This document shows positions 56,549 to 59,547 of a stretch of DNA of 64,000 nt, piece after piece (position 1 is the stretch's first letter; every line of letters starts with the position of its first letter). The stretch lies in sequence record MN871440.1; one strand, 5' to 3'. Both the position numbers and the translations under genes were made by a program. The notes beneath the pieces are model-generated. The model had not been told where the DNA came from and did no database searches. It was given only the letters and a program-made list of their open reading frames with translations.

Positions 56549-58348
56549 TTATGATCCGAAAATAGTCATATCTCGGTTGTCTACCTCATATGTATTTATG
56601 CCGTCATCAATAATGGCACCAATCATGAAGTCATCGAGCATTTCTTCCATTTCTGCTTGGAATACGTCGGCACCGACGTTTCTCGAAGCATCAATAAAAT
56701 CACCGAATCGCTCTTGTGTTGTCAGATACGCAAATATACACAGCGACATAACCAAATCGTCATGAAAACCGTCTTGTGCAGCCCAACTAACACCCTTTTC
56801 TACAAACGTTCTAAACTCTTGAATTGTGCCTTTGTGTTTCACAATCAACTTATCTTTTTCGATTAAGTCTTTTAGAGTTGAACATCCAACAGCTTTGGTT
56901 GATTTAGTCTGTTTCATACCGAGATCTTTACTTGAGTCAACGATTACGTTTTCATATTCAAGATCAATAAACAAAGACTTAGCCACCATGTTACCTATAC
57001 TATTTAGCTCTATATAAACCCACGCATTATTATATTCCATACAATATCTCATAATAACGCTTGGCAATAGCAGTGGTGAAATCTTGTTCGAATGATACAC
57101 CGCAACCTGTTTATATGGATAAACGGTAACATCGATTATTTGCATGGTGCTATAATCTTGTCCACGACCTTCGGCAGGGTCAACGGTTGCAACATATTTG
57201 TGTCCTTCGATTGGTCTCTCAATTTGATAGAAACAATCATCTGGAATAACCTCGGTCCACCCCATCTTAGACAATTTAAATCCGTTGATAAGAGTACCAG
57301 ACGTTCCCATGAAACGGCAGCAATTATGTGTTAGAATTCCGTTGGCATAGAAAATGTTGCCACCATCAACGTCCCGAATGTCGTATAAATCAATGCGCTC
57401 GTTTATTACATCTTTATTGATTATTTCAATATCTTGACCGTCCAAAGGAACAAGCATACCAATCTCAACATCTTCGGCATACAAACAATACTGAATCTTG
57501 GTAACTGGATGAACAAGAACGAAAATGTGTTTATCGCTTGTCTCAAGTGTGAGTCCATTTTTCATTTCAAACTTGATGTATCGGTCATGACTTACCTTTT
57601 CAATGCTGCCGATAGCTCTGTATCCAGAAGGAGTTTTGATCTTAATAGAACTCTCGCTGTACGTCGGAAGAGGAGCAAAGCTATTTCGTTTCAGACATTT
57701 GATAAGCGCATTGTGCACCGCTATTTTGGTGCAATCTTTAGCATGAGTTTCCTGATACCAGTTACTGAATTGTCTCTCCGGAGGAGACATCATTCCACTT
57801 CTCGGACAACGTTTCAATTCGTATGTGTTGATGTTTTCGTAATACATTTTGCCAAGATGTTGAGTGTCGATTTTAATACAGTTACGACTCGGGGTTTTCC
57901 CTTTTCTGTTCATAGATTGTTTCCTTTTGGTTTCTTCCGAGAGTCCACAGCGTTTCACAGAATAACTATTGTTTGCTTTTCTAGTAGAAACGATTTTATT
58001 GATCGTTTCCTCTGTGTGTTTTTTGCCTTTCATCCCATTATGTTTCACTTTCTGCTTCTCAACATCAAAGTATGAATCATTGAGATAGTTATCCCATTTG
58101 TAAACTCTTTTATTTACTTTGGACTCCCAGATCAAAGCCGACTCGGCAGTTTTGAATGTCTTTCGTATTTCAACGTCAAAGTCATCCTTGCCGTACTTCT
58201 CGATTAAATCATGAACTGCTTTGCTACTTGTGAAATATGTAGACCACAAACACGATGGATTTGCGTCTTTAATTGCGTATTTCACACCATAATAATGCTT
58301 ATTCTCGGTCTTGTTTGTTACGCGATACGCGAACGGTATGTATTCCAC
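56549..58348 (-). CDS. 17: fusion ORF: GIY-YIG homing endonuclease + C-intein + terminase large subunit C-extein (nuclease domain)
   Basis: AYRVTN..YYGVKY and NUMOD3-like GKKHTEET; intein end [12 protein letters not shown] at 57323/57322; extein [18 protein letters not shown]. Confidence 0.92.
57323..57660 (-). mobile_element. C-terminal fragment of split intein (most of Hint domain)
   Basis: [17 protein letters not shown] (block B TxxH)..[13 protein letters not shown]; left boundary approximate. Confidence 0.9.
57700..58348 (-). mobile_element. Seg-like GIY-YIG homing endonuclease moiety
   Basis: [25 protein letters not shown], conserved E (WESK) and N (YLN), NUMOD3-type repeats; boundary approximate. 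Confidence 0.85.
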
Positions 58349-58419
58349 AGTTCCTCCACACTCATATTCTTTTCTTGATTATCAATCATAACATCGACGC
58401 GAGTTGTTCCAATCAAGCA
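58318..58419 (-). mobile_element. N-terminal fragment of split intein
   Basis: block A CLIGTTRV followed by (M/I)SVEELW. Confidence 0.88.
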
Positions 58420-59547
58420 GTGTTCTTGTTGAAACGCTTCGATACTTGACGAGTTAATTTGTTTGGTTGACCATTCAAACCCATCATCATACATATCAGC
58501 GCCGTTATACAGACGTTCTTTAACGGTAATCCAAGTCGTGGTGTATGGTTTAAACCCTTTATCAGAGTTAATTGATACTTCCCACAGATCATACCAGTGA
58601 TTAATCCCGTTCGGAGTTGACGTCAGAATAATACGAGATTTACGTCCAGACGAAATAACTGGTAGAATTGCTTTCCATGTATCATCAAAGTTTTCAATAA
58701 ACGCCGCTTCGTCAAGATAGATCAGTGCGAAAGAGTTACCACGAACAGCGTCGGGAGAGCTTGCGTAAGCGCCTATGGAGCATCCGTTTTCGAGTTCGAT
58801 GTTACCCTTGTTCCACTCAACAATACCGGGCTGTAGAAAGTCTGGCAGCAGTTCAATGGACTGTTTAGTACGTTCCAGAACTTCTTTTGACATATCACCC
58901 TTGTGAGCAAGAACACCAACAGCTTTTGCTTCGTTGAACACAACAAAGTGAGTCAAGAAAATAGCGGTCGCAGTTGTTTTGCCCAACTGACGAGGCAAGT
59001 TATGAATGCTCATGCGCTCGGTTGCCATAATACGCAACATATCTTTTTGATAGTCGCGCAATTGAACCTTAATTACACCCCAGTCAATATGAATAATGGA
59101 GCAATAAGTCTCGGCGAAATAAACGATATCATCACGACAACGTTTCCATTCTTCAACCATTTCGCGAGTCCATTTAGTCGGGACGTTTGCGCGTTTCAGA
59201 TTAGGAATGCCTAGATATCGAGTTCTTTTATTAAAGCGATCTTTAAATGTTCTAAAGTCGCTCGGGTCTTTCCCTTGTAGATTCATTTTCTGAATACGCT
59301 TCAACTCGGAATAAATGTCATACGACTCCGGATACCAGCGATCATCATGTTGACTCTTGTAATAAACGCATTCTTTCAGAGTACGAACAACTTTCTCGCC
59401 ACGTTCGTCCTTAATTACAAGAACACCATCCGGCTGTTGAGTGTAAACAGCTTCATCTTCGCCAAATACATCGAGTGGCATATCAAAACTTACAACTTTT
59501 CTTTCCAGTTGTTCAACTGGTTTCATTTCCTCAGGCATCAACGACAT
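58318..59547 (-). CDS. 17: terminase large subunit N-extein (ATPase) + 33-aa N-intein
   Basis: LPRQLGKTT Walker A, IYLDEAAF Walker B; ends [27 protein letters not shown]; start moved to ATG 59547 after GAAGGAG. Confidence 0.93.

Follow-up and report, generated by a model that had tools for sequence, protein, structure and literature searches.

How is a complete large terminase subunit made when its gene is broken in two? The question is raised by terL (gene 17), which in the stretch of 64,000 nucleotides (nt) from sequence record MN871440.1 analyzed here (the window) lies on the minus strand and is divided between two open reading frames (ORFs) that overlap by 31 nt (ORF list). The comparisons described below support the view that an atypically split intein, of the same type as AceL-TerL and GOS-TerL, broke gene 17. 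The distinguishing feature of the locus is that a homing endonuclease of the GIY-YIG class is fused in frame to the C-terminal intein fragment (IntC) at a split located after block A. The interruption is quite probably a composite intein-endonuclease element, situated at the hinge of a T4-type terminase and acting by trans-splicing. The locus, already annotated in public records, is a variant both of the atypical TerL split intein and of the fractured gene, two known kinds.

The upstream ORF (ORF1, 59562..58318) was assigned an ATG start at 59547 (MSLMP...) on the basis of Aeromonas phage Aeh1 gp17 and the annotation of phage PX29. The ATPase domain of its product, 17A, matched Pfam Terminase_6N (E 1e-39); the nuclease domain in the C-terminal flanking segment (C-extein) of the product of ORF2, 17B, matched Terminase_6C (E 8e-23). 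In an earlier note on this DNA, ORF1 was described as ending in FQQEH followed by an N-terminal intein fragment (IntN) of 33 amino acids (aa), ORF2 as holding SDKH and YANGILTHN ahead of the nuclease half, and the exteins as summing to 376 + 257 = 633 aa. All of these statements were confirmed on the minus strand, and the sum equals the length of the uninterrupted Aeh1 gp17. Each extein is 90% identical to its counterpart in that protein (residues 1-376 and 377-633). At the insertion site, Aeh1 gp17 reads FQQEH-LCRFMGTS, and the window junction after splicing would read QEH-CCRF; the sole junction change is thus Leu to Cys at position +1. The last N-extein residue aligns with His352 of T4 gp17 (structures 3EZK/3CPE/2O0H), 8 residues short of the end of the crystallized N360 ATPase construct, which places the element at the approach to the inter-domain hinge. 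The 17B model's C-terminal part matched the T4 and RB49 gp17 structures (Foldseek).

The break falls after block A: IntN comprises 33 aa (<40 aa), and blocks B, F, and G are all found in the second ORF, with block B as S271-x-x-H274 (SDKH), D323 in block F, and H341-N342 at the C-terminal end. In an alignment with six homologues (38-70% identical), S271, H274, H341, N342, and Cys+1 were invariant; Cys1 was present in 10/10 IntN sequences compared. Residues 1-25 of IntN form a conserved core, and its last 8 aa represent the start region of the endonuclease read in another frame. A phmmer search matched IntC to CatC, a consensus engineered atypical TerL intein (PDB 6DSL_B; E 8.8e-9); the alignment starts exactly at the first residues of IntC, at an identity of only ca. 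29-35%. The same PDB entry was the best intein match of the AlphaFold IntC in Foldseek (TM score 0.70, E 2e-7), and the predicted local distance difference test (pLDDT) values of the 17B model are 73-84 within IntC. IntN by itself returned no match against the PDB. Class-1 trans-splicing is the best-supported mechanism by which the two halves of gp17 would be joined.

The second fragment of the intein is 342 aa long, not ca. 110, because a 232-aa endonuclease is fused to the N-terminus of IntC. Although the endonuclease begins at a start codon of its own, it lacks a stop and continues in frame into IntC. Residues 2-~95 of 17B constitute a SegE-type GIY-YIG catalytic domain (Pfam PF19835, E 4e-8, 33.8-35.4 bits, cut-off 25); NUMOD3 motifs are located at residues 108-145 (PF07460, 20.7 bits with the module scanned alone, cut-off 20.4), and a helical C-terminal part occupies residues ~160-225. 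The module also matched PHROG 314 (“homing endonuclease”, E 2e-16), and its AlphaFold model has a beta-beta-alpha-alpha-beta-alpha pattern. Over its full length, it is 34-39% identical to the free-standing endonucleases of three related loci (L023-L025), and Y8, Y19/Y20/G21, R62, E75, and N90 are invariant between the module and these free-standing homologues. The probable targets of the enzyme are the intein-free terL alleles of related phages (Aeh1-like) infecting the same cell, and its cuts would spread or protect the element. This module had been missed in the earlier note. The split of the AceL/GOS type proposed there is upheld by the CatC match, the fold, and the catalytic residues, but the plain split is not; likewise, the Hint and nuclease parts of ORF2 had been recognized, but the endonuclease (~232 aa) and the 31-nt overlap had been overlooked. 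Given the GIY-YIG endonuclease fused to IntC, the locus is a fractured-gene variant and not a plain AceL-like split.

The whole inserted element (IntN, GIY-YIG endonuclease, and IntC) spans ~1.1 kb. The computed masses are 47.7 kDa for 17A, 68.9 kDa for 17B, and 72.9 kDa for spliced gp17; those of the parts that would be released are 39.8 kDa (endonuclease-IntC) and 3.9 kDa (IntN). Near residues 200-240 of 17B, where a bare IntC-extein protein would begin, no internal ATG, GTG, or TTG with a credible ribosome-binding site was found. The endonuclease, IntC, and the C-extein would therefore be made as one polypeptide. Between the halves, neither the T4 late-promoter motif TATAAATA nor sigma-70-like promoters nor terminators were found above chance. 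The coordinates of all features, including the neighboring genes, are collected in Table 1.

Table 1. Features of the fractured gene 17 and its neighbors (window coordinates).
Feature	Coordinates	Strand	Length	Description
Gene 16	60049..59531	-		Neighbor of gene 17
Gene 17A	58318..59547	-		N-extein (376 aa) + IntN (33 aa) + stop; from ORF list, Pfam, Aeh1, PX29
N-extein	58420..59547	-	376 aa	ATPase domain; C-terminal end ...EAFQQEH
IntN	58321..58419	-	33 aa	Aligned with IntN of nine related split inteins
IntN Cys1 codon	58419-58417	-		
Shine-Dalgarno sequence for 17B	58353..58357	-		GGAGG within IntN Glu-Glu codons; 4 nt upstream of GTG
17A/17B overlap	58318..58348	-	31 nt	17B in -1 frame; also in L018/L019 and L020/L021
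17A stop codon	58320-58318	-		TAA; falls within endonuclease Y-R-V codons
Gene 17B	56549..58348	-	599 aa	One ORF, GTG start; GIY-YIG endonuclease + IntC + C-extein
Homing endonuclease module	57653..58348	-		17B aa 1-232
IntC	57323..57652	-	110 aa	17B aa 233-342; SDKH and YANGILTHN; blocks B, F, G
IntC terminal Asn codon	57325-57323	-		
Cys+1 codon	57322-57320	-		
C-extein	56552..57322	-	257 aa	17B aa 343-599; nuclease domain; first residues CCRFMGTSG at Cys+1
Gene 18	56538..54499	-		Neighbor of gene 17

Relatives of the element were found by an exhaustive HMMER search, and the loci were then fetched with their genomic context; a word-indexed protein search with IntC had returned the window's own protein only, and the exhaustive search was needed. 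The two-ORF layout and the in-frame endonuclease-IntC fusion are kept in L018/L019 (70% aa identity in 17B, 31-nt overlap), L020/L021 (49% aa identity, 31-nt overlap), and L022 (46% aa identity, 23-nt overlap). A tblastn search of phage genomes located a homologous element in the cultured, T4-like phages Providencia PSTRCR_127, Yersinia MHG19, and Serratia 92A1. In these phages, 17A ends in a 35-37-aa IntN, a GIY-YIG ORF of 236-237 aa with its own stop overlaps the end of 17A by 32 nt, and 17B (MVPNKKYKIKT...) has its own ATG, overlapping the end of the endonuclease by 14 nt. The metagenomic loci L026 and L027 also have this three-ORF layout with a free-standing endonuclease. All five share with the window the insertion site, homologous IntN, IntC, and SegE-type GIY-YIG endonucleases, and an endonuclease Shine-Dalgarno sequence and start inside the IntN codons; they differ in having three ORFs (the 17B ATG overlaps the endonuclease by 11-14 nt) where the window has two. 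In a tree of IntC plus C-extein, these loci formed one clade (support of 95 in the Shimodaira-Hasegawa-like approximate likelihood-ratio test) among many IntC-first TerL fragments, and a GIY-YIG gene or its remnant is present at the split in 10/10 loci of the group seen in context (window included).

The state of the endonuclease varies within this clade. In the window and L018 it is fused and full length. In L020, where the copy is fused, the DNA-binding part and the N-terminal 20 residues (MEYIPYTYRV...YYY) remain, while the catalytic core is missing; in L022, also fused, all that survives is the last ~80 residues. A linker motif, CL(K/N/S)R(N/G)SF.PLP, is common to the four fused forms, although weaker in L022. 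The fused forms grouped weakly (82) in the endonuclease tree, with the free-standing L026 as sister; in the C-extein tree, L022 paired with L026, which conflicts with the endonuclease tree. These data are compatible both with a single fusion and later transfer and with repeated fusion. Atypical splits without any endonuclease occur as well (L005/L006, with a 118-nt gap), as do cis-splicing mini-inteins at the same TerL site (e.g. P0036, P0063, and P0089). Two groups of candidates were set aside. P0004 and P0005 (IntC at residue 1) were considered as endonuclease-free descendants of fused forms, but free-standing GIY-YIG ORFs lie just upstream of them; P0046, P0066, P0096, and others (IntC at ~250), considered as endonuclease fusions, are multi-intein TerL pieces. 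As a separate observation, the insertion point (57320-57322 / 58420-58422 in the window) shifts by one residue among sub-lineages. With the intein ends in parentheses, the arrangement is QEH(C...HN)C-C/A in the window, L018, L023-L025, and L027 and QEH-x(C...HN)C in L020, L022, and L026; in the latter, the Cys at +1 is the one native to intein-free gp17.

A Shine-Dalgarno sequence and a start codon inside the IntN codons V/I-E-E-L-W/Y are kept in ten loci, and GGAGGA/GAGGA followed by a start codon is kept in L018, L020, and L022-L027. In the two-ORF lineages, the IntN codons V/M-E-E/D-L-W spell GGAGGA and then the start codon, the context being CTG TGG (giving GTG) in the window, CTA TGG (ATG) in L018, and TTA TGG (ATG) in L020. 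ATG serves as the start codon in all relatives but Yersinia phage MHG19 (L024), which has TTG.

The following course of events is proposed. Genes 17A and 17B would be transcribed together. Translation of 17A would begin at the ATG at 59547 and end at 58320-58318, yielding the ATPase half with a 33-aa IntN tail; ribosomes would begin anew at the GTG at 58348, guided by the GGAGG inside the IntN codons, and produce the single 17B protein. IntN would then dock with IntC, whose HINT fold is nearly complete, in the manner of the AceL, GOS, and Cat TerL inteins, and class-1 trans-splicing (Cys1, S-x-x-H, His-Asn, Cys+1) would generate the 633-aa, 72.9-kDa gp17 and free the 3.9-kDa IntN and the 39.8-kDa endonuclease-IntC. 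The endonuclease would cleave intein-free terL alleles. The docking and trans-splicing steps are inferred from homology to inteins that are active in vitro.

Several points weigh against this scheme. Splicing, endonuclease activity, and the GTG start in this phage are predictions from the sequence. IntC carries an N-terminal domain of 232 aa, and docking of IntN beside that domain is presumed. The profile searches proposed in the earlier note for the Hint domain gave a divided answer on IntC: the NCBIfam model of the C-terminal splicing region (TIGR01443, intein_Cterm) scored above its cut-off, but the Pfam HINT/intein models were not significant (Intein_splicing, E 0.14). The AlphaFold model of 17B has a low overall pLDDT (51.6) and is too poor to place the endonuclease relative to IntC, and the usual GIY-YIG catalytic Arg was not assigned with certainty. 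As a start, the GTG with its 4-nt spacer is weaker than the ATG that most relatives have. Finally, the insertion is near the ATPase/nuclease boundary, and non-covalent complementation is conceivable.

Two rival explanations would dispense with trans-splicing. In one, the stop and overlap are bypassed, through a sequencing error or a -1 frameshift, and a single precursor with an embedded GIY-YIG module splices in cis. Features that speak for it are the -1 frame of ORF2 and its overlap with ORF1, the GGAGG in the overlap of the two frames (motifs of this type stimulate frameshifting in dnaX and prfB), and the cis-splicing mini-intein alleles at the same site. An error in the sequence is contradicted by the other records: over 3.3 kb, identity to the window is 100% in AsFcp_4 and AsFcp_1 and 99.9% in AsFcp_2 and PX29, the last differing by 4 substitutions and 0 indels over 3301 nt, and the frames are the same in all five genome records (window, PX29, AsFcp_1, AsFcp_2, and AsFcp_4). 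The one continuous frame that, according to the earlier note, would refute its reading was absent; extein, intein, and extein cannot be read as a contiguous cis intein, because the 17A stop intervenes and the frames differ, an arrangement shared by the five records and by divergent relatives. Against frameshifting, it can be noted that in each lineage the reading frame of 17B closes 7-10 codons upstream of its start, that no X-XXY-YYZ slippery site was found and no slippery heptamer is conserved, and that the overlap sequence shows no conservation beyond the Shine-Dalgarno sequence and start codon. No stable RNA structure, be it an attenuator or a frameshift stimulator, was found at the 17A/17B junction (z -0.06 vs. 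shuffles). The relative frame of the endonuclease, deduced from coordinates, is -1 in the window, L018, and L020 but +1 in L023, and free-standing relatives have their own stop. Frame closure, the missing slippery heptamer, the unstructured RNA, and the other frames in relatives make initiation of 17B independently of 17A much the best reading of the sequence; frameshifting or sequencing error is close to excluded, and a cis-splicing precursor arising in this way is scarcely credible. In the other rival explanation, the halves act as separate subunits without splicing, and the intein parts are a dimerization handle or relics. The location of the insertion close to the inter-domain hinge, 8 residues before the N360 end, would suit such an arrangement, as would the case of Aeh1, a sister phage in which a fractured gene (NrdA, mobE) works unspliced, as summarized in PMC2677866. 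However, Cys1, S271/H274, H341/N342, and Cys+1 are all kept across lineages that are 46-70% identical, IntC is under purifying selection, the +1 residue is Cys where intein-free Aeh1 has Leu, and the homologous AceL, GOS, and Cat TerL inteins splice efficiently in vitro (PMC11766414). The conservation of every catalytic residue, together with the change of Leu to Cys at +1, renders complementation without splicing improbable. Separated T4 gp17 domains are not known to package DNA.

If trans-splicing is accepted as the means of joining the halves, the role of the endonuclease must still be considered. It may be inactive, a fixed passenger that provides a start and a linker for IntC in an immobile element. 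The in-frame decay of the module in L020 (no catalytic core) and L022 is in keeping with this. So is the nucleotide identity between the window and L018, 61-66% for the element and 73-80% for the exteins; with the exteins more alike than the element, a recent transfer is not indicated. Recent homing was also sought as an identity gradient around the junction in comparison to Aeh1, and none was found. On the other side, the module in the window is full length, and it has kept the residues that are invariant in free-standing homologues. In the comparison of the window with L018, the synonymous divergence (dS) was saturated, whereas the nonsynonymous divergence (dN) was 0.36 for the endonuclease and 0.34 for IntC (0.06-0.16 for the exteins and neighboring genes), and the aa identity of the element was 60-63% at 56-59% nucleotide identity. 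With dN far below the saturated dS, the element is under purifying selection, and both the endonuclease and IntC are maintained as proteins, although less tightly than the terminase. The distribution among close relatives is sporadic as well: over genes 16-18, Aeh1 is 81-84% identical to the window, closer than L018, yet it has no element, and Aeh1, Ah1, and avDM12-TAAL, all closer in the flanking genes, are without it. Elements that move or are lost repeatedly typically show such a patchy occurrence. The disagreement between the endonuclease and C-extein trees also argues against an immobile passenger, which is considered rather unlikely. A contrasting proposal, advanced tentatively, is that the fused form is functional and selected, i.e., that it is a split intein with an endonuclease in its C-terminal fragment and that the composite still moves between T4-like phages. 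The essential C-terminal half lacks its own start codon, and in the favored reading the endonuclease start is needed for its translation; this dependence would explain why the frame and first codons have been kept in decayed copies (L020).

The element can be compared to several known systems. The trans-splicing inteins AceL-TerL, GOS-TerL, and Cat-TerL are active with IntN fragments of 25, 37 (reducible to 27), and 30 aa, respectively (PMC11766414). They interrupt the same host protein (T4-type TerL) with the same break after block A, and the window likewise has a short IntN and an IntC with blocks B, F, and G and the S-x-x-H motif; AceL and Cat also have Cys1 and Cys+1, as in the window. They differ in having a bare IntC (104-115 aa in the characterized inteins, with ~104-122 aa taken as typical of the class), where the IntC-bearing fragment of the window has 342 aa with the endonuclease. 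AceL and GOS came from metagenomes, without an organism at hand, whereas the phages with this element are cultured, form plaques, and grow on a mesophilic or psychrotolerant host; the activity of AceL, GOS, and Cat is experimental, whereas the intein in the window has been characterized only as a sequence. The “fractured genes” paper (Dassa et al. 2009, PMC2677866) was the first to record the terminase break after motif N1. In the genes described there, including the Lake Gatun terminase locus, which is broken at the same unusual point as the window, an essential gene is broken at an intein with an endonuclease and overlapping ORFs, and the host gene lies in two ORFs with split-intein halves, as is found here. 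However, a free-standing GIY-YIG or Vsr-like ORF lies between those halves, and in the window the endonuclease is fused to IntC instead. As stated there, GIY-YIG domains were not known inside inteins, and in the model of that paper, loss of the flank of the endonuclease gene could place the endonuclease in frame with the intein; the fusion in the window matches the half-fused intermediate that was predicted. Finally, the nrdA/mobE locus of Aeh1 (Edgell lab), as it is summarized in PMC2677866, is an essential gene split by an HNH endonuclease with overlapping ORFs, as in the window. In that summary, nrdA has no intein and its halves assemble non-covalently, whereas the window has the full set of splicing residues.

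The intein had been put forward in the earlier note as new. This was not borne out, as GU396103 (PX29, 2010) already states that 17A “contains putative N-intein” and that 17B “contains putative GIY-YIG endonuclease and C-intein”. No paper describing the locus was found in the searchable literature on PX29 with intein or terminase, and a 2010 review of T4-like genomes lists two homing endonuclease genes for PX29 without mention of an intein. Annotation of 17B is inconsistent: the RefSeq record NC_023688 calls it simply a “homing endonuclease”, and AsFcp_4 and AsFcp_2 carry it as a misc_feature, which is non-coding. The endonucleases of MHG19, PSTRCR_127, and 92A1 are annotated as “hypothetical protein”, as is one of the two terL halves in PSTRCR_127 and 92A1.

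A number of side observations were made in the course of the analysis. Position 58330 is the only difference between the window and PX29 within the overlap. It is synonymous in IntN (Ser), and it changes residue 7 of the endonuclease, which is Ala in the window and Thr in PX29; all other homologues have Thr at this position (F/Y-T-Y). In L022 (1-5353; Logan SRR27204706, T4-like), terL is apparently in four pieces with three atypically split inteins, located after the Walker A GK, after the Walker B DE, and between QEHL and C, each with its own endonuclease. The first is a module of ~350 aa with a faint MUG113/T5orf172-like match, fused in frame after the first IntN; the second is a free-standing DUF723 ORF that overlaps both neighbors; and the third, joined to the last IntC, is the GIY-YIG remnant. 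In L018 (1967-2228; also L019), the fused-type relative nearest to the window, terL has a further break at the Walker A codons, between HNLPR and QLGKTT, consisting of ~300 nt without an ORF. This insert gave a match to the Rfam group I intron RF00028 that spans the whole model but, at 37 bits (E 5e-8), falls below the gathering score of 50, and terL in L018 may thus hold both an intron and a split intein. The same intein family was seen in a gene for a ClpA/ClpC-like AAA+ ATPase in L007-L016 (IMG/VR; e.g. L007 4626-7160 and L010 3403-7190), with the same atypical break and an IntN of 24 aa (CVLGDT...) just past a Walker A-like GEPG. The halves in L010 are separated by a 400-aa ORF that shares 4 nt with the IntC start and may encode a Vsr/PD-(D/E)xK-type endonuclease; L007 has no ORF between the halves. 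Adjoining a split terL in L005 is a 1096-aa portal-like ORF (6219-9509) that, judged by eye, seems to contain two further intein-like insertions (CLSGDTLIPLLDG... and CIVPETKIPLLDG...HNS), one of them with an HNH-like stretch.

The locus leaves knowledge of how such inteins work unchanged, and its basic annotation has been public since 2010; its significance lies elsewhere. PX29 and the AsFcp phages on Aeromonas salmonicida constitute a cultured, genetically tractable system, with the intein-free Aeh1, whose host range overlaps that of PX29 (PMC2993671), as a natural partner, in which a natural atypically split intein would have to act for DNA to be packaged. For protein engineering, the element is another putative short-IntN intein with Cys1 and Cys+1, from a mesophilic or cold-tolerant host. 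If the fused form is indeed functional and selected, the endonuclease would occupy the S1 (post-block-A) position and not the canonical endonuclease insertion point, and the element would be a living intermediate between the free-standing endonuclease of a fractured gene and a bifunctional intein. The arrangement would also be a form of addiction that guards the endonuclease start from deletion, and endonuclease and terminase would be made at a ratio of 1:1. With respect to the origin of the unusual split, a SegE-type GIY-YIG endonuclease, whether free, fused, or decaying, is located at the break in the loci of this group; the locus supports the gene-breaking model of 2009 (PMC2677866) and supplies the half-fused intermediate that it predicted.

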